Shown here: piece by piece, positions 3,510 to 48,808 of the stretch
Numbering within the stretch: the stretch's first letter is position 1
Layout: each line of letters opens with the position of its first letter
Assembly (NCBI GenBank): GCA_964304625.1
Contig: OZ199840.1
Span: forward strand, 9,470,882 to 9,534,881
Direction of reading: 5' to 3'
Length of the DNA: 64,000 bases
Origin: Kudoa neothunni
Taxonomy: Eukaryota > Animalia > Cnidaria
The notes under the pieces: model-generated
Database searches by the model: none
Told to the model about the DNA's origin: nothing
Seen by the model: only the letters and a program-made list of their open reading frames with translations
Position numbers and translations under genes: made by a program

Positions 3510-3839
3510 GGTGTACCTCTAGACCACGTGGTCAATAAATGACATTTTATTTGATATCCTTTTTTTACGTTGTATCATTAATAACGCACGCGTCCAACGA
3601 TTTTTGTATTCTTTAATTTGATTGTAGATAAATTAATACTAGTTTTATTCATTAAATTATAGTTGAAAATGCACAAATCTACTATGAGGTTTCATGAATC
3701 GATGCATCAGAACTGATTTTTTATCTCATTTTGTCTGAGTTTATTATCACAACGCGTTAATTAATAGAGAAATACTCACAATTTATAATAATACAAAACG
3801 AGATCCGATTATAATATTACAAAACTATATGAGTGTGAA

Positions 3840-4451
3840 TTAACGACGTCTCTTTTTATTTTTTTTCTGCACAAGAGAATCCGTCGATGTTGTAGACGGT
3901 TTGCTTGTCGTACTATTCACTCGACATTTTAAATTAGGTATTGATTCACCAAGCATGTTGAGAATGATTCCTAAACCTCCACATAAAACTCATTTGTGAC
4001 AAAATTAATCAAACTTTTAGCATTTCTCCCGGGGTTTTTATTCTCAAGTTCGGTTAAATCAACTTTCACAAGCCCAATCATAGGATTGTCAATGTAGCTC
4101 CCTTTGGGATATTGTTTAGATCGCTATATTATATACAACCAATAACTGGCTATATCCAATAAAAACACGTACAACAACTGCAAATTCCATATTCAATGAT
4201 TTGAGAACTTGAGCTATCTCATCAATATTTGGATTGTGAACCGCCTAAAAGTCATTTTACAGTAAACTATGCATCATCCGAGTAATACTTTCGACGCTGG
4301 AACCCTTCTACCCATCGAAATTGACCTATCCCTATCAAGATAAGCCGGATAAATTGTGGTATATCTATTCGTTGGGTAGCGTATAATTTATTTTATTAGC
4401 TTAAATGATGTACGATTTAATTTTGTCAAGATCCACTTCAAACTGACTCAT
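3840..4451 (-). CDS. SRP19: Signal recognition particle 19 kDa protein (5 exons)
   Basis: Manual translation: IYPAYLDRDRSISMGRRVPASK / AVHNPNIDEIAQVL / KQYP / IPNLKCR, ending in a basic tail KKNKKRRR*. Not in the ORF track because the exons are short. Confidence 0.9.
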
Positions 4452-25500: not shown

Positions 25501-26109
25501 AGAATCCGATTTCGAATGGCCATACATTCTTGTGAATATATTTGAGAAAAAATATTCATAAACAATTAAATTTATTTGTATTTTTTTCTCCTGCCATGTC
25601 ATGGAATGATATATAAAAATTTATTATCTCGCTTTTTTCGCTAATAATAAACTGAAAAGGGGTCATTCTAAAAATTTGCTGTTGGGTCTCCGACCTCAAA
25701 AAGCAAAAAGCCACGTTATTTGATGGAACCTCGCAACCACTATAAGGGAAGTATCAATTTTTAAATTATTTAAAATTTCTTTAACTATATTTATACTTTT
25801 AAAAACGAATAAATTTGAAAACTAAGTTAAATAATTCAAAAATTAATAAATAGAACGTTCAATATCAAAACATCACTATATTCAGGTTCGACTTTGTATT
25901 AGTGATAAAATATTTATTAATCTAACAATCTTTACATTATACATATAATTAAAATTGCGATTTTGCGTAAATTAATTATAAAATATTGATTTAATTTTAT
26001 AAAACAACTCCACATTTGTTAATCGTAAATGACGACAATCACCAATACGTAAAACTAACTAATATTGATTGTTTAGTTAGACAAAAGTGTATATTTTCTT
26101 ATTTCCATA

Positions 26110-29100
26110 TTACAGATAGAGAGAAGGATCTTTAGATTTTCTTCTGAAAATAGCCAATAGTATCACCACTAGCAAAAGGAACATAATTGGTATCATCACG
26201 TATATACTAAACATAATTCAATATGAATCCACGATTGACTTTTACATGTATCTGGTAATAGGTCTATTTAAAATTTAAAAATACTAAAATTTCAACAAAA
26301 ATTACAGATTTCTATTTTTGGCTGCTTCATGCTCAACTTTTTCTTTACTATCTATGTTATATTATTTCAAATTTAATACATGTATTTTTATTAATTTTAC
26401 TAAATTAATTAAAGTTAACAAAAATTTGGTAAAATTTAATATACCCTTCCTTTTCTTTTCTTATTAGTTTTGGAACTATATCAAATATCTCAATATTAGT
26501 ATATTCACTTCCAAGATAATTTTCATCTACAAATTATTAATTTTATCTATTTTCATATTAATCATACTAAAATCATAATTAAAAATATATCACTATATTT
26601 TGAATACCCCAATAATTTTTTGATTTTTGAATCTTTATTTCGTAAAATACAATTATTGTAGATTAAAATAGTTGAATTTACATGGAATATCGTGGATTTG
26701 ATAGGTTGAATGGTCCTTCACTTTCACTGTTAATCTGTAATCCTTCTCCTTCAATAATCCATTAACATCAATGGTACATCCATTGGCTGAACATTCCTCC
26801 TCATCATTACACCAGGTAACTGCTGGCTCTGGAATGCCACTTTCAGTCTTCTCATGCATCATGAATGGACATTTATAAGTGTCACCTTTTCCGTTAAAGA
26901 TTACGTCAATTTTCATGTCACTTTCTTCGTCCAGTGTATAACTTATACTTGTAACAATATTAGCTAAAATCCAAGGTAATTAATTATATGGTCCCAATAT
27001 ATATATATATATTACGCGCGGTAATTTCAATATTTTTATTCTCGTAACCATCAGTTGGCTCAATGGTTACTCCATAAGTTACTCCGAATTGTAAGTTTGT
27101 AATCTTGAACGAACTGTGACATTTGTTCTCACAAGCCCCCAATCCTTCACATGTAGCCATGAATTTTGGGGACGATGCGCTCTTCTTTTTAAGATGAATT
27201 CTGCATAGTGACGATGAATCTCCATTGGCAAATGGTGTCAATGTGGTAGTTACACCATCCACTGTACTGTTAATATTTGAATCTATCAATACCATCCCAC
27301 CACCTAAAACTTTGTATTTTAAGTGGTTATCATTCATAGTTACTTGTTCTGAAAAGCATTTTTTTGATGTAAGACTCATTCACACCAAGATTAGTGATCG
27401 TCACTGAAATTAAATAATTTGTTCCAGCCGCAAGGTCGATAATGGAATATGACTCATCGCAACTGTCATTGCAACTATCGTTACTACATTTAGCTCTAGT
27501 TTCAGTATATAATGTATTAGCTCTTGATATTTTAATGGTGCATGTTCGGGCACTATTTTCTGGTTTAATTTGCTTATAATTATTGAGTCTGGAAAGTGTG
27601 ACGCCATTTCCAGTGATTTCACTCAAATAAAAACCAAGGTCACCACCTATTGAAACATAAATTATACGAATTTAATTATAAATTACTTGTGAAATATTGC
27701 TTAAATCCAGTGGAACCAAATCTCAGCTTAACAATCACTCCGATCTTTTGATAACTTCTAGATAAATTAATGGTACCATCTTGACAAAGTTGATAGCACC
27801 CATCCGCCAAAGTTCCACAAGCATTCAATACACTGTCTGTTTTATCGGAACCTTCATCATTCACCTCATATACTTTAATGTGGCACATCTCATCGTTATA
27901 TGGGCCTGGAGCGAAATTAATTTTTATTTGGTTATTGTTATTTTCAACAGTTGATACAGAATAAATAATTTGAGATCTTATAGTAATAGTTTTATTAAGG
28001 AATGTATTGTTTGTGTAATAGAATAATGCAGGCCACAAAAGGCTGGACTCAATTTTATAATAATTTATATATCTATCGACCGGGAGATTAGTATGTTTAG
28101 TTTCAACAGTGTCGGAAAAATTATTCACATTTAACTCAGTTTCCTTCGATTTGATAGTGGTATCTTCATTTCCATCTACATACACCTTCCATTCTGTTAT
28201 CGATGTTGTTTTGTAGGTAAATAGGATGTCATTTTCTACGTGATTTAATTGATAAGTATTATTTTGTATTGTTCCTAAATAATAATTAAAAAATAAATTT
28301 ATTATATAATATGTTATTTCTGCTATTTATTAGATATAGGAATAGAATGAATATTGAAATTACCCATTTGCACGACGAATACGTTCACATTTTCACAAGA
28401 TTTTGCTTTATCGTCAGTTTCACCATAGCAAACTGATAGATAACGATTAATTTTCGAATTTATATATCCAATCTCGATATCGGCTGATTCACATCCTACC
28501 AAGCAAAACTCAGTATCATTATCTTGAGCGCACGTTGGTTTGATAAAATCATGGTTAGCTTCAAAGTTGGATATTTTTATAGCGCATTTATAACCATTGG
28601 GAAATTCTGATAATGTTACGGAGAGTTTCCCAATATCATTATTATTTTGCTGACCAAATTTCTGTGTTAGTTTTCCAAATCCAGACAAGGCTACCAGAAT
28701 AATTAATAAAATAAATTATAGGGTTTCTCGATCAAACTCGACAACATGAAATTAAATTCGGCATTTAATGTTAAAAAATAAAGCTTATTTTGTATCCAAT
28801 TGTTTTTTAAATTTAAAAATTGTACATATTTTTATTATTAACAATATTTGAGAAAAATATACGCATAACAGAGAATGACTTTGTTTATGTTCTAATATAA
28901 CAGCCAAATTTGAGGTGTATATTCATTTTATAAACAAGACTAAAATTAGTTTTCAAAATATAATCTTCACATTTCTTTTCGCTTTTTTAACGTTAAATTT
29001 CTTATGCCGAATGCTCTAATAATATAAAATTGTATTGATTTATTAAGGGAATGAAATTTACGATTCTTAGAATTAATATATTACTTTAAAATATTGTTTA

Positions 29101-32100
29101 TTTTTCATGAAAATTAAATTTTAGAAATCACCGCCTTAAGATAAATTTGATGAATTTTGACATTCTATTTTTAAACCTTGTATATTTTAAACTAATCTCT
29201 ATCGTTATATTTACCTTTTAGTTTAAAATATATGAATATATTTATACTAAAAGTTTAAAGACTATGTTTGGTTACATTATATAAAAAATGAATTATGGAT
29301 TAAAAATTTAATTGTATATAATTATAACATCAAATGTATTATTCGCAACTAAAAAATTTATATGAATAATAAATAGGTAATATTCTATAGACTTTTGCAT
29401 ATTATTATTATTTAAAGCTTACAAGTTTGAATTTTGATTTAATAGATTAATTAAGTGAAGTAACACATCATAAAATTAAATAAATATTTTCAGTCTGGAA
29501 AACTTTCTTGATCGGAAATCAAAGAAAAAATCAAAATGAACTGAAGTTGACAATCACTCAATTTATCAACAAATCACTCCGTCTCACTGCAACAATTTAT
29601 ATTGAAAAATGTTGGGCTAGCTTTCTTGATCATTTTGGTGGGAGATAATATTAGAATCAACTAGATATATAATCTTTAATGATTATTTTTGGAAAATTAA
29701 TTGGTTTTTGGCTGATGTTTTATGTCGAGTTTGATTGCAAAAGTGGCGTGCTTGATAGAAAACCACCATATAATAATTATACCTGGAATCGCCATCTTGA
29801 ATGGGGGAGATTTTCCATCTACGTATATCATTAATCTGTAGTTATTCTTTTTGTTATATAAGGGAGATTCAAATTGAATATGATTGCATTTTTTAATATC
29901 CACACTTGCAGTTGCACATCCAACACATGATTGCAATATTTTAGTTGGTGAATCTAAATAATAATTAAATGAATAGAATTATTTTTATTACTGTCTCCTG
30001 TTTCATGCATATGAAGCTGATAATAGCAATTTTTAGTACTGGCCTCGTCAATATCTGTTTTTGGAATTATTTCGAGATTACTTTTTGTAGATTTTGTCGA
30101 AATTTCAAATTCAATAATCTTACCAGCTAAATTATTGTTTATTTAATGTTAAATAAATAATTTTACTTGTTTCTTTATTATCCAAAATTACAACATTGTA
30201 ATATTTACTTGGTACCACTTTTATATCATAGGTCCCACCAGAGTATAACCCAACAATGGTAAATTCCTGGTCGCATTTTTTTGCGCACAATTCATTTCCT
30301 GTGCATATAGCAGGATAATAATATAATTTATTACGTTCTCTCACATAAATGGTACATGTGATTGTTGTAACTATAGTATCAGGTGTAAATTGGAATCCAT
30401 CAGTGGTTTCACTAGCTGATATAGACCCACTAGGCAACATATTTGTGTGAGCTAGAATAACATAAATATTTTTTATTATAGTTAAATTATATACTTATTT
30501 TATGATAAAAGTATTTTCTTGGTGAATAATGCGGTAAACCGGTTATTTCAACCATAATATCGTTGGGTACATCAGTTGGATTAACTGGTATAACCATTTC
30601 TGCAAAGTTACAATTTTCTGAATTAGTAACAGTTTCTCTTTCATTCTCTTTAACCAATGGAGCATATATGTTCAACATTTGCAGAGAACAAGTTAGTTTT
30701 ATTGAACTAGTCACAGCTCCACCATTTTCATTCTTGATATTTGCAGAGATATCAATTTTGAATTTATTATCAGACGTAGTAGCAGAAACGTCATTTACGT
30801 GTTTCACTAAAATACTTAATTATATTTTATTGAATATAAATTATTACGTATGTAAATATTGTTTTGATAACCAATAGTGGGCTCCATTCCTAATTTGAGA
30901 ACACGCAATTTTACTGCTTTCACATCATTGGGAATATTGTCAAATGTAACGTTACTACACAGACTGAAGACACAGTTTTTATTATTCTCACAAATGTTCG
31001 AAAAAAATCTATTTTGAGATGACGCTGTAGCATCTATCCATTCAAATGTGCACATGTTAAATGGTTCTTCGTTAACCAGCTTAACTGTTAGGTTATTATT
31101 TGTTTCATCTACAGCTAATTCATAATAAAACCTGCTAAAAATTGGTGCAGTATTTTTAACAAAAGTATTATCATAAAAGTAATGAAAGTCGACATGTTTT
31201 GGGCAACTTATAAAATAATCTTCAACCAACTCATCGAATTGGATTGAGTAACTTCCATAAGTACACGTTTGTTGACCTTGAGTTCCCGCTATATGATTCA
31301 GTTTTTGTACATCCTTAAATCCTTCGCAGTTTAGAGAACATTTTTTCGTTTCTAATTTTATTTGATCTTCATGTAATGTTGCTACACGCGGTATCTCTTC
31401 GAAATAATCTTAACAACCTTAAATTTAGTTTGCATTTTAGTTTTACCTGTGTAGGATGAATAGACTTTTCCTACATAGTACATTTTATGTATATTGATTT
31501 TCTCAAGTGGTGTTATTTTGGTTAAAAAAACCTCGAAATCTTCCTTGTAATCACGCTCCATTATTACTTTCAAATTTTCTGTCATTTCAACCTCCTTTTT
31601 AGTTTTATCAGATGTGGCTTGTATTCCATATTCAACATTAAAATATCTAACGGAAATATAATTCAGTTTGTCTTCACTATTAAGATTAATAATCGATTCA
31701 GATGCAAAATCTTCACAATTTTTAGCTATTTTTTCATTATTTTCGTTTACATTTATATATGTAGATGATTCGGAATTAAATTTTCTAATCGAACACACTT
31801 TTTTTCCCTTAAATAGATCACTCGATAATTTCACATTGTATTTATTCAATGTTGTGTAATATTTTAAAATTAAACCATTCGCTGTCGCTTCCATACCTCC
31901 TAAAATAATTGAGGCTACATTATATATTTATTAAGTTACTTGTGATTATTAATTTCACTGGTTTTGCGGAATCTTTATTAATAATTATTAATTCGTAAAT
32001 CATTGCAACATCAATAGTATTCAATGAAATATCAAGTGAGATAATTTCCGGTGATGTTTTTACAGCAGGGTCACATACGCTATTTAAACAGTCCAAAATG

Positions 32101-33977
32101 GTTCTTTTAGATTCTTGCTCCAAAAGAATATATCCCCATAAACTTCCAAAAGAATCTGGCGTTGTAGGTGTGGTAGCGGTGATTTTCACTGCAGTATTAT
32201 CTTCTGTTTGTTCCATTGATACGTCGATCCCATTAGCTATTTAACATAATTACTACGCTATTACTTAAAAAACTACTGGAAATGGTCGAGCTAGTAACAC
32301 AAGTGAAACCCTCGGAGCAAACAGTTATCTTATAGCCTGTTTTGGGATCAAGATTTACAATTTTAAATGAGCTAGAACAGCGATAAGAGCAAAAACTTTT
32401 GTTATTGTCTGTCTCGCAGGTTGCAGGAAACTTCGATGGGTCGTCTCCGTCAAGTGAATAATATAATTCGCATGTAGCATCATTATTATTTTCGCCATCA
32501 AATAAATTGGACAGAGTCAGTGTCAGTTTCGTATTATCGGCATTAATGGCAGATGGTGAGTTTTTTTTAGGACTGTAAAAATCACTTCCTAGTTAATTAT
32601 TAAATAGTTTTTTTAATATTTTTTATTACCTTTAGTTTTGAAGAAAAAATATCTGTGATAATGTTTCACTTCGAGAGAATCTATAATTGTTAATCCAGTT
32701 ATTTTCACCTTTAGGATGTATTCAGTTGACGGTGAAAGTCCTGATATAGTTTTTGAATCGGAATTTCCACATTCATCATTACATGATTCATCTTCTCCAG
32801 TGCTTCCAATTCCAAGAAATTTTGGAATAATTTTAATTTCTGCGATGTTTGCTTGACCTTCGGCTACGTTATTTTCATTGTTCTTTAAACTTGTTAAATC
32901 TATCGTTACTTCGCTATTATTATTATTTGTACGGAAAACGTGAGGTTGATCAATACCAACTACAAAGTTAGTTAAAACTATAATGAAATTAAATAAATAC
33001 ATGTCACAGTTTGAATGAATTCTTTTGAAGTGGATTGAATGATTGATTTAACAAGTACTTGAGCGAATCCCAAATTACTATCATGTAACAATGTCGCTTT
33101 GTAGCAAGGTTGTAGGCATGGTCCAGCTTTATTCATATCTGAGCAATACGAAGAAAAGCGCGAATCATTAATTTCCTTTATACCAAAGTAACACAACTTT
33201 GATGGCTCTGGGTTCTGTAATTGTATTGTGTAATAATATTTGGAATTAATATCCTGTTTTGTTCCAGATGCAATAAACCAATCTTCAACTGGTTTTTTAG
33301 GATTGAGAAATATTTCGGGAGATTTATCGTTAAATTCAACAATATATTTTGGTTTATTTGATTTCAATTTAAGTTTCACCGATGATTCTGTGTAAAATGA
33401 AATGTTAGTTGCTTGACTTATTTCAATATCAGAGTTTTCTTTAAGAGTGAAACCCTTATTACTTTTACTTTTGACTTTAACGGTAAATTCATCATTTGCC
33501 TTTTCCACTCCAAAAATAGTTTTTATTGGAATGTCTATAATAATATATAATGGTTTTTATATACGTTAAGATTCAAATACCCTCGAATGAAAAAACTCTT
33601 TTAGCAGAACACTTTTTTATATCATCGTCATTTTTCCCTTGACACCATCTTAAATATTTAATTTTTTTAAATGCATCCCCACTAAACTTCAATTCTATTT
33701 TCTTGCACTCGTAAATGCACATTTCCGAAATTTGTTCATCACTGGCACCTTTTATATCCTTAGTGCACGTAGGAATGTTTTTAAACGTCTTATCGTTTTT
33801 ATCGTAAAACTGGATACCGCATTTTTTGTTACTATTTTCAAGATTGTATCCCGAAATGAAAAGAATATATTTTTCTGATGTTTGCGAAAAATGATATTTT
33901 ATCATGTTATTATCAATTTCCGACGTAAAAACACATTTTAAAAAGAAAACTAAAAATTGTTCATTATAAAAATACAT
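26110..33977 (-). CDS. Large orphan type-I membrane protein with tandem Cys-containing FN3-like domains (three 5-exon blocks); could alternatively be two tandem paralogues split at 28.7-29.7 kb
   Basis: N-terminal signal-like MYFYNEQFLVFFLKCVFT. Exons of about 100-190 aa are joined by phase-1 GT-AG introns. Recurring C-x-I...C...C...C...I..L...Y.I.V motif. C-terminal TM IYVMIPIMFLLLVVILLAIF followed by RRKSKDPSLYL*. A phase-compatible intron at 28691-29782 joins the two halves. Confidence 0.75.
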
Positions 33978-45622: not shown

Positions 45623-48600
45623 ATGCTAGCCGCGGTGCTCTTTGGTTTAATACTTTTTGTGGGTTCCGGTAATATTTATGTTAATATATTTATATACGCG
45701 CCAAATTTGAAGAGCATTCTACCTCTACAAACAAACAAAAGCAATGCCTCCTTTGTATATCACGATCAAATCGAAATTGGTGTGTAGATGGAGTAACCAT
45801 TTCTACTAAAATCTCATATTTAAATAATGGATATATATGTAGCGGAGTTCAAAGGAGGACCAATGTGTGTCAAATGAAACTAGCGAATGTATATCTTATG
45901 CTGAGAACAGAACTTTAGTAAACTTAAATGTATTAAAAAATTCAACAGTTTGATTACCTAAATTAAAATATTTTGGTTTGATTTTATATAGGTCCCACGA
46001 AAATCCACATCTAATTTGGATATTAGAGATAAAACATTGTTAAAGTTTCCTCGGTTATCTCCACGTAACATTTGCTATGTTTCCACTGTAAATATTGCAT
46101 ATACCAAAGATAAACGTAAAAAAGTTAAAACTACTCATAACGTTTCTCTGTTTCGCATGGAAAAAATTCAAATATACTTTATTATTGATATATCCTTGGC
46201 AGGGTCAGTGTATTGGCAGCGAGCAAAAGCGTTAAGTTAATTTCGGATATTTTAATTTTTTCTAATTAAAATAAATAGTATCAGAAATAAGATCCTATCT
46301 GGCGGTTGAAAAAGGTATTGGCTTGTTGTATAATAAAGTCTACACGTCACAAAAGTATAATATTTTGATGATGATGATGATGATAATACTTGTTTGCCAT
46401 TACATATCCTATATCCTATCCCGTAGGACGGTATATGATTTTAAGAATTTAGTTGAAATAACTGAGGACAGTAACAAAATCGTAAGTGTTTAGGAATCCT
46501 CATTTGATTATATGGGTTAATAGGAAAGAATCATTGGCGAACTAGATCAACAACCCAGACAGCAACATTCTACCGGGTTCAATACTCGCCAGAATGTGGC
46601 CATAGATACTATTATCCAAACTATAATATGTGATAAAAAGGTTTTAAACATGCATGTATATCAACTTAATTCACCCATAATAGATCAACTGGGATAGCAG
46701 TGTCACAAGTAGGAAGTATGTGGTTCTATTTTCCGACTCATTGCCATTGTCCGCGAGGAATCACCAGGTAAAACTAGAACTAAATATTGAATAGAAACTC
46801 AATAAATTTAACCTATAAAAACATACTCAGATGCCCATCTTCACGAAATATGAAGACTTAAAATGTGAAATATCAGACTTAGGACTATACAGAAATAAAG
46901 TAAAATAGTCGCATTATTTATCTGCCAGTGTATACATTTGTATGTAATGCATAAAGAATATTGTTAACGATGATCGAATATTCCATTCGATTCTTATCAA
47001 AAATAGGGTTGAACTATTTGTGGCAACATCTAATCACACTGTTCAAACAATATATAAAGTATTATTTAAAATAATGTTTGTAAGGTTGAGTTTATAAATT
47101 TGAAGAAACTTTTACAATACAATAATTATAACCTTGGAGAGGTGTTTATGTACAGCCCAACTTCCGCATTAATTCTCTCTTTTTCACAATTTATTAATGT
47201 GAGAAAAATTAAATTAATATATTTTAAATAAAACATCTTTATTTTTATCCAAGAAAGCAAACCAAGTGATAGTACTACCCCCACAAGACGATAACTATTT
47301 CTCTTTCAATGTGGTGAAGAAACAAATGTTTGATTTTTAATCATACAGCTGTTATAATATATAATTTTATAAATGTATATTGAATTTAGACCTCAACCCT
47401 GGGATTCTAACCTTGTTAGAATAACCATATCGATAGAAGTTATAAAGTGTTTACCGGGAAATCAACCCAAATTGTACTTACCATCTAACTATTAAAATAT
47501 TTTAAGACTTGAGATTTTTGTTCAGATACGATATCATTTTTGCCGGTTTTGGAGCTATAAAAATGGTGCTGAATACTTTCTATTGTTCATGCGACTGTGA
47601 AAATCCCGATCATTATACATACGTAAAAAATTATTATTTGGTTTTGAATAGGAAATTACTATATTTTTCTTATCTGTAGAAAATACTCAGTGAATTGTGC
47701 TCACTGAATGGAGACCATATTTGTGGGCATTGTAGATGCAATCTACACAGGTAAACAAATATTTGGCGCCAATTTAGTTGGATAATTTTTAGTTCGGGGG
47801 AGAAATGCGACACACTTAATGATAATTTACTAGAAAAAGGTGACAACAATTTATCAAAACATTGTGATGACATCAGCGAGCACAATTATGGCATTCAAAG
47901 TTATCTAAATGAAACAACAGTTTTGAGTAATCCTTGAATACTTGACGTGTTACTAAGAAATGCTCTTAATTAAACAGATAACTGTAATTTTCAACAATTC
48001 AAATCATTTATGCTAACCAGAAACTGTGTCGATCCTACCACCAACCAGGTTAAGCCACAAAATAATAGCAGTCTCTATTTTCATGGTTGTTAGAAATGTA
48101 ATAACAAAGGAGAATGCCCGTATGGGAGGTGCGACTGCTTCGTGGGTTATACAGGGGAATTTTGCAACAAAATTGTAAATTAATAATAGTGTACACTAGA
48201 ATTACTTAATTATCAATAATATCATTGCTAGGATAAATATGAGCTTTGTGATAGGGTCACTGTGTGCGTCAAGGAAAAATACAAGTTAAATAATGAAACT
48301 AAGCTTATACCTATCACGTTAATCCAAAATGAATTTTGTTTATCTTTGAAAGAAACTGCGATTGATTCATTTGACAACAAATTTGACTGTTACTTTGATA
48401 TACTTCCCTGTGTGCATAAGTATAGTGTGTTGATGAGTGAGGGCCGTTATTTTGTTAAACTTGATCGAAAAAATTGGAAACGTAAATTCGATTCGATAAT
48501 TGATTATTAACATATTTGAAATAGTGTGTAGAACCATTCGTCACAGAGATATGATGATATTAGGGTATGTTGGTGCAACGATTGGGGTTTTGTTTACGAC

Positions 48601-48808
48601 TTTTGTGGTGTACATATTGGCCAGCAAGAAATCAAAGGCGGTGTATCTATTGACTTAATTTCTCACTACTCATGTCTATGTTTGAGAACATTTTACAAAA
48701 TGCCTTTGTATTTAGCTCTTCAAATCAGAGTGGATGCCATTTTTACCCGAAACATTGCCCATCAGATTATTACATACTAAATCCGCCTCATGTGATGAGT
48801 TGATGTAA
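45623..48808 (+). CDS. Divergent integrin beta subunit (many micro-exons)
   Basis: Signal peptide; PSI-like CLLCISRSNRNWCVD; RLSPRNI; beta-I segments YDFKNLVEITED, IDTIIQTIICDKKINW..KYVVLFSD and LIKNRVELFVAT; I-EGF repeats CSLNGDHICGHCRC and CNNKGECPYGRCDCFVGYTGEFC; TM helix and a short tail. Confidence 0.8.

Follow-up and report, generated by a model that had tools for sequence, protein, structure and literature searches.

Three kinds of described proteins come closest to the gene reported here. Animal type-I membrane proteins built entirely of fibronectin type III (FN3) domains, such as the receptor phosphatase CD148/DEP-1, consist of a signal peptide, a long tandem chain of FN3-fold modules encoded by phase-1 exons, and one transmembrane helix; tandem-FN3 type-I proteins are typically cell-cell or cell-matrix adhesion molecules. 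In class I cytokine receptors, the FN3 fold is braced by conserved cysteines. The variant surface proteins of parasites, among them the Giardia VSPs and the VSP-like and RIFIN/STEVOR-like genes of the myxozoan Sphaerospora molnari (preprint 10.64898/2026.02.11.705288), form large cysteine-rich type-I families with a variable ectodomain, a conserved transmembrane segment and a very short conserved tail. We have analyzed a gene of the myxozoan Kudoa neothunni that has features in common with all three. It occupies positions 26110-33977, on the minus strand, of a 64,000-nucleotide stretch (contig OZ199840.1, positions 9,470,882 to 9,534,881, of assembly GCA_964304625.1), hereafter the window, to which all positions without a contig label refer. 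This is probably one intact gene for a ~1,917-residue type-I chain of FN3-like modules, one of ~60 paralogues, and a candidate for a host-facing adhesin or coat component.

The locus differs from each of these systems. Compared to CD148-type proteins, its modules fall below the fn3 sequence cut-off (14.4 bits at best, versus 25), its tail of 11 residues holds no phosphatase or other cytoplasmic signaling domain, and the family has a four-cysteine block in most modules, double-length modules without known relatives and a ~60-fold expansion. Compared to class I cytokine receptors, the cysteine spacing (C-x15-21-C-x4-15-C-x3-4-C) is different, 16 modules take the place of a two-domain binding unit, and the tail has no Box1/Box2. 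The WSxWS motif, a criterion for the cytokine receptor homology module, is absent from every exon translation; the IL-5 receptor complex, the D2 domain of the prolactin receptor and domain 4 of the beta-common chain are among the weaker fold matches. The Kudoa copies show signs of sequence exchange, as do parasite variant surface families, but they encode a chain of FN3-like modules of ~1,900 residues instead of CXXC-rich ectodomains of 300-700 residues. The general kind, a tandem-FN3 type-I surface protein, is known, whereas the family itself, its cysteine signature, double-length modules, cassette history and myxozoan expansion are undescribed in the literature that we searched. Neither the K. 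neothunni genome paper (PMC12239612) nor the preprint on lineage-specific myxozoan surface genes (10.64898/2026.02.11.705288) mentions fibronectin or FN3.

Gene structure and the large intron

The minus strand between 26110 and 33977 is a chain of open frames in an AT-rich window (~30% GC). All frame-preserving GT..AG pairs between consecutive frames were enumerated. The shortest intron at each junction is phase 1 and 38-52 nucleotides long, with GTAA or GTAT donors and TAG acceptors; one measures 89 nucleotides. The exception in length, likewise phase 1 and in frame, is an intron of 1,092 nucleotides between 29783 and 28690. The resulting model has 18 exons, all of them open, and ~5.8 kb of coding sequence for ~1,917 residues, including 63 cysteines. 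Sixteen ectodomain exons are followed by a small stalk exon and a transmembrane exon. An initial sequence-only reading of this DNA had joined about 15 open reading frames through phase-1 GT-AG introns; the phase-1 chain stands, but the exon count is 18 and the acceptor of the transmembrane exon (26206) is phase 2. Exon 18 therefore cannot directly follow exon 16, and a stalk exon of 26 codons is needed between them.

The proposed juxtamembrane stalk, exon 17 (26445-26526; ENYLGSEYTNIEIFDIVPKLIRKEKE), turns phase 1 into phase 2 and has 81% amino-acid identity in the two nearest paralogues. Exon 18 (26110-26206) is 90% conserved in the nearest relatives and encodes the transmembrane helix (IYVMIPIMFLLLVVILLAIF), a hydrophobic 20-mer with RRKSK directly after it. 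The basic cytoplasmic tail, RRKSKDPSLYL, ends at a stop codon at 26110-26112, in agreement with the 11-residue tail of the earlier reading. Three cassette copies (see below) of beta-sandwich modules, the majority FN3-like, the short basic stalk, one transmembrane helix and this tail make up the layout of the predicted protein. Distant paralogues conserve a short tail as R/K-K-N-S-K-D/E-x-S-Y-D/E-L, with …SK[D/E]xxY[D/E]L at the C-terminus. The conserved tyrosine lies close to the hydrophobic C-terminus and may act in sorting or as a PDZ-type signal.

The 1.09-kb gap had already been bridged in frame, and the same junction was recovered here, with the donor after 29783 and the acceptor before 28690. 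At more than 20 times the usual intron length in this gene, the gap could instead separate two genes, one for a secreted protein ending near 29.7 kb and one for a membrane protein starting near 28.7 kb, and the open frame does continue for 27 codons beyond the donor to a stop at 29697-29699. However, nine paralogues from six genome regions, including a neighboring paralogue 8 kb before the start of the window, are colinear from exon 1 (E1) to E16 and then the transmembrane exon, and a tenth has the same order with frameshifts (C2:6.21 Mb; C1, C2 and C3 denote the three large contigs). The E11/E12 junction is an ordinary intron of 45-55 nucleotides in five distant paralogues with the same module order; only this gene and the three copies closest to it (C2:11.91, 6.21 and 6.25 Mb) have 1.1-1.5 kb there. 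E12 (28364-28690) has no signal peptide and no Met before its last residue and thus cannot start a separate gene, and the 29783|28690 junction is in frame and phase 1, as are the other module junctions.

The additional length of intron 11 (28691-29782) is accounted for by a mobile element. Inverted repeats (28724-28743 and 29723-29742) sit 33-40 nucleotides inside the intron ends, and both element ends align with the termini of a 2.3-kb element located at C1:7368434-7370770, whose open reading frame of 285 residues matches DDE_3 (E 1.7e-13) and paired-box/Sleeping-Beauty helix-turn-helix domains. The copy in intron 11 is non-autonomous and internally deleted, with a length of ~1,055 bp (~28717-29771). 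Without it, ~37 nucleotides of the intron remain, a normal intron size for this gene. The large intron 11 is a short intron enlarged by a Tc1/mariner-like insertion, a clean case in which a 37-nucleotide intron was inflated and the gene left unbroken. Based on the short introns of the paralogues and the transposon origin of the extra length, we reject the two-gene reading as scarcely credible and retain a single giant gene for a type-I membrane protein, as had been proposed.

Internally deleted copies of the Tc1/mariner-type element are present in intron 11 of this gene and of its three nearest paralogues, and fragments of the element ends occur at C3:5435567, C2:9694434, C2:9663629, C3:3836173 and C3:866589. 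An Rfam scan of the whole window gave no match, so the repeated part of intron 11 is not a known RNA gene.

The four-cysteine module and the cassette repeat

Pfam and homology searches were run exon by exon, on single exons. None of the 16 ectodomain exons reached the Pfam gathering score. The best fn3 matches are those of exon 4 (14.4 bits, E 0.044) and exon 14 (13.3 bits, E 0.1), with none in the other 14; exon 4 also matched Pur_ac_phosph_N, itself an FN3-like domain, at 18 bits, below its gathering score.

An alignment of 33 modules was assembled from exon classes 4, 9, 14 and 15 of this gene and seven paralogues. Seven positions are invariant (C33, A49, C51, C57, C61, L70 and Y76). Two of these, L70 and Y76, belong to the FN3 tyrosine corner (L-x(4-5)-Y-x-hydrophobic-x-V) and are present in 33/33 modules; the alignment has no column corresponding to the conserved strand-B tryptophan of FN3. 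The AlphaFold2 model of exon 15 (27016-27303), a four-cysteine module, was computed from this alignment and has seven strands (predicted local distance difference test score, pLDDT, of 80; predicted template-modeling score of 0.72). Its leading Foldseek matches against the PDB are all FN3 domains, with template-modeling scores of 0.6-0.7, a probability of 1.00 and E of only 3e-3. They include 10Fn3 monobodies, fibronectin FN3-6 and FN3-3, CD148 FN3-2 (7u01_C), Tencon, sDscam FNIII and contactin FN3. The nearest clusters in a shape search of the ESM Atlas are mostly annotated as fn3. The model thus assigns the four-cysteine module to the FN3 fold, which bears out the cysteine-stapled FN3-like domains read earlier from the sequence, with their invariant L-x5-Y motif.

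The four-cysteine block is located between strands C and E, with the E and F strands after it. Ten of the 16 ectodomain exons contain it, and it also extends across the E10/E11 pair; two cysteines are kept in E3, E5, E6 and E8. Each module has an even number of cysteines, as would be predicted for disulfides formed within the modules of an extracellular chain. In the double-length exons, the block lies in the C-terminal half. Neither the N-terminal halves of these exons nor E7 as a whole have detectable relatives in Pfam, PDB sequences or the Atlas: the E7 profile gave 0 matches at E<=10 against PDB sequences and no usable match in an ESM Atlas feature search, and the AlphaFold2 model of E7 from 7 sequences is unusable (pLDDT 43). 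Exon-level Pfam, PDB, Atlas and protein searches found no signaling domain and no match to a named family, as the sequence-only reading had anticipated.

The ectodomain exons form three blocks of five modules, E1-E5 (33977-31940), E6-E11 (31899-29783) and E12-E16 (28690-26682). The common exon layout claimed previously for three blocks holds with these boundaries, except that module 5 of the second block is split into two exons. Module 1 is encoded by E1 (33581-33977), which contains the start Met at 33977, a weakly hydrophobic N-terminus (MYFYNEQFLVFFLKCVFTSE), the four-cysteine block and two more cysteines, and by E6 (31447-31899) and E12. The double-length modules occupy the second position: E2 (33001-33534) has 177 codons, E7 (30848-31408) has eight cysteines and shows the strongest conservation in the family (76% mean column identity), and E13 (27687-28274) has a preferred acceptor at 28274 and a possible one at 28322. 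The third position is taken by E3 (32630-32959) and E8 (30495-30806), and by E14 (27344-27646), a four-cysteine FN3-like module. Four-cysteine FN3-like modules also make up the fourth position, consisting of E4 (32277-32588; donor 32277, with alternatives at 32274 or 32265), E9 (30167-30451) and E15. The fifth is represented by E5 (31940-32236), by E10 (29992-30126) together with E11 (29783-29953), which are separated by a 38-nucleotide phase-1 intron, and by E16 (26682-26963), the final ectodomain module, with four cysteines.

Profile-profile comparison (hhalign) of exon classes built from paralogues gave best between-class matches that always pair the same cassette position: E1 with E12 (92%), E2 with E7 (82%), E3 with E14 (83%), E4 with E9 and E15 (97.4-97.5%, E about 1e-11), and E5 with E11 (62%). 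The alignment of the three fourth exons had been noticed at the outset. E13 is linked to E7 and E2 via fragments from outside the genome (P0006, P0007 and P0009) that match all three. E14 matches the position-4 class too (90-94%), which makes positions 3 and 4 one module type. These comparisons support an ancient threefold repetition of a five-module cassette. As the 3 x 5 layout is common to all paralogues, the triplication predates the expansion of the family.

Family size, selection and mosaic relationships

Exon 15 has at least 150 matches in the parasite's own genome (40.26 Mb in four contigs). E7, a single-copy module in each gene, is found ~57 times intact at full length and ~10 times in broken form, with copies on each of the three large contigs; its conserved pattern, DFHYFYDNTF...FSRFYYE...VKAVK.RVLKLGM, is present in this gene. 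Clusters of copies occur throughout the three chromosomes, including some close to chromosome ends (C1 0.34-0.51 Mb; C2 11.9 of 12.04 Mb). The description of the gene as an orphan must therefore be abandoned, given these paralogues, the distant module matches and the fragments in four outside samples. The distant matches to E7 number more than 75, at 22-31% identity in open frames of 200-440 residues (e.g., C2:8989970-8990398, C3:624012-624443 and C1:14391739-14392167), and point to a much wider superfamily.

A search of 1.84 billion representative proteins with the E7 profile gave nine matches, all unnamed singletons on contigs of 0.6-2 kb. Four of the nine were traced, to four different samples. 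One fragment (L026) has 69-74% DNA identity to family members and thus comes from another species. Another (P0002) keeps the E6-E7-E8 order at a protein identity of <=44%; it was considered as a spliced transcript and rejected, being genomic DNA whose short introns stay open by chance.

The published K. neothunni assembly has 40.2 Mb, an N50 of 12.0 Mb, three chromosomes and a circular mitochondrial genome, 30.4% GC and a median intron of 49 bp (PMC12239612). Its annotation, built on protein hints, comprises 5,316 proteins with a median of 348 residues (PMC12239612) and is unlikely to model these genes in full. The unusual (TAAACC)n telomere occurs at a single chromosome end, that of C2. A nematode origin, which a 40-Mb genome with three chromosomes and short introns might suggest, was rejected, as no SL1 leader is present within 2 mismatches.

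The ratio of nonsynonymous to synonymous substitution rates (dN/dS) was estimated by the NG86 method. It is ~0.2 against distant paralogues, with saturated dS, indicating that the family is constrained. Against the closest intact paralogue (a single pair of 1,900 codons, dS 0.16), dN/dS is 0.67 overall, 0.34-0.41 in the three double-length modules (0.41 in E2, 0.34 in E7 and 0.38 in E13) and 0.28 in the transmembrane exon, compared to 0.95-1.31 in E1, E3, E5, E6, E9, E14 and E15. Among all modules of the gene, E6 varies most, with 54-63% protein identity to the nearest paralogues, versus ~71-88% in the flanking exons, and ~30% to distant ones. This pattern suggests that the modules predicted to be exposed are diversifying.

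Which paralogue is closest depends on the part of the gene: E3-E4 are most similar to the C2:11.91 Mb copy (84-86% versus 69-73% DNA identity), and E6 and E9-E12 to the copies at C2:6.2 Mb. Such a shift suggests gene conversion or recombination. The latter two copies (C2:6207320-6214850 and C2:6246000-6253400) are ~38 kb apart and have identical per-exon identities to this gene, and are thus near-identical duplicates of each other.

Proposed role and alternative explanations

As parasites of fish, myxozoans matter economically, and Kudoa spoils the muscle of tuna and flounder. To our knowledge, next to nothing is known of the molecules that face the host on the myxozoan surface, and the majority of myxozoan genes are unannotated "orphans". 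A family that accounts for ~1% of a 40-Mb genome stands out as an evident candidate for the host-parasite interface, and this one offers a recognizable fold, a clear membrane topology and a division between conserved and fast-evolving modules. We propose that the protein would form a rod, with a length of several tens of nanometres, that projects from the surface of the parasite cell, and would act by binding rather than signaling. The conserved double-length modules E2, E7 and E13 may form a constant core, and the fast-changing single modules, E6 foremost, a diversified, exposed part, as expected of a host-facing adhesin or surface coat. Judged from sequence, such an adhesin or coat component is the most likely role. 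The exon-level model is directly usable for the design of probes, antibodies and expression tests.

Several points weigh against this proposal. The gene model, the protein and its surface role are predictions from genomic DNA. No reads from three large species-labelled RNA runs and one contig set were placed on 26080-32079, a result that is uninformative as an expression test, since hardly any of the host RNA reads align to parasite sequence (PMC12239612). Exon 17 and several exact splice sites are proposed on conservation, and a confident fold prediction is available for one module type, that of exon 15. Enrichment in N-glycosylation sites was considered as support for an ectodomain and rejected: over all exons, 16 N-x-S/T sequons are observed versus 26 +/- 4 in per-exon shuffles, a mild depletion despite the Asn-rich composition. 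NG86 applied to one pair in an AT-rich genome gives crude estimates, and dN/dS near 1 in the single modules could reflect relaxed constraint rather than diversifying selection. The signal peptide of this gene is weak, the four-member subfamily to which it belongs has no compatible exon for a canonical one (see below), and two of these four members are frame-broken (apparent frameshifts split the matches to E4, E12 and E13 or to E5, E7 and E9). The copies at C2:6.2 Mb look like pseudogenes or very recent broken duplicates.

The start of the protein is central to one alternative. Met 33977 is kept in the closest paralogue, where the frame of an upstream ATG (34028) is stopped. The start read previously at this position is therefore retained, but the signal peptide read there is weak, with a hydrophobic core (Kyte-Doolittle 9-mer 2.56) and no basic n-region (MYFYNEQFLVFFLKCVFTSE). 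In distant paralogues, the first large exon opens right after its acceptor, without a Met. A small exon 0 with a canonical signal-peptide beginning (MMMIRLSLRQRYASTIYLVILP or MKILSLKRYASTIYLVILT, donor GTAATTTT) lies ~40 nucleotides upstream in these paralogues; it was seen near L022:2664-2800 (C1:345.7 kb) and at the equivalent places in L018 and L015, with the junction MMMIRLSLRQRYASTIYLVILP|GT. Such an exon is absent or phase-incompatible here and in the closest relative, and the start is an internal Met. A candidate upstream signal-peptide exon for this gene (MEKLPVNTSFIFF|GTATTTTT) was rejected because its donor is phase 2 and the sole acceptor needs phase 1, and the upstream frame is stopped in the closest paralogue. 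In another cluster of the family (C1:468-487 kb), a run of ~200 N (L020 ~3,750-3,960; C1 ~480.8 kb) upstream of the second gene covers its exon 0 region and may be an assembly gap.

Given the lack of a compatible exon 0, we keep some probability for a poorly secreted or decaying copy, in a subfamily that lost its signal-peptide exon and is drifting towards pseudogenes. The frameshifts in the two C2:6.2 Mb members, the overall dN/dS of 0.67 and the transposon within intron 11 would fit such decay. However, the ~5.8 kb of coding sequence is spread over 18 exons that are all open and have intact splice sites, dN/dS has stayed at 0.28-0.41 in the conserved modules and the transmembrane exon since the last duplication, the conserved cysteines are all kept, and the N-terminal hydrophobic core persists; a decaying copy is thus unlikely. 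A use within the parasite, in which the protein joins parasite cells (primary and secondary, or valve-forming) or builds spore structures, deserves more serious consideration, since adhesion is, as a matter of general knowledge, typical of animal tandem-FN3 type-I proteins, E7 is highly conserved across the family, and the sequence-only reading placed an integrin-beta-like candidate nearby in the window. We nevertheless doubt it, because ~60 paralogues, fast-changing modules and a mosaic structure are more typical of conflict interfaces than of housekeeping adhesion. Programmed antigenic variation, with one or a few copies expressed at once and switched, draws on the large cysteine-rich type-I family, its short conserved tail, variable modules and signs of sequence exchange, and on the preprint that proposes variant surface families in another myxozoan (10.64898/2026.02.11.705288). 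But the loci are spread over all three chromosomes and not restricted to the ends, where some do lie, and no expression site or switching element was seen, which makes switching quite improbable. A related and slightly less improbable idea, though still a distinctly speculative one, is that the ~60 genes constitute a surface-variation system in a cnidarian parasite, with a constant core (E2, E7, E13, transmembrane helix and tail), diversifying modules reshuffled by gene conversion, and few copies expressed to evade fish immunity.

The host-facing adhesin or coat component remains our preferred reading. Elsewhere in the window, the sequence-only reading labelled 45623-48808 as an integrin-beta-like candidate, which would bear on the adhesion repertoire of the parasite.

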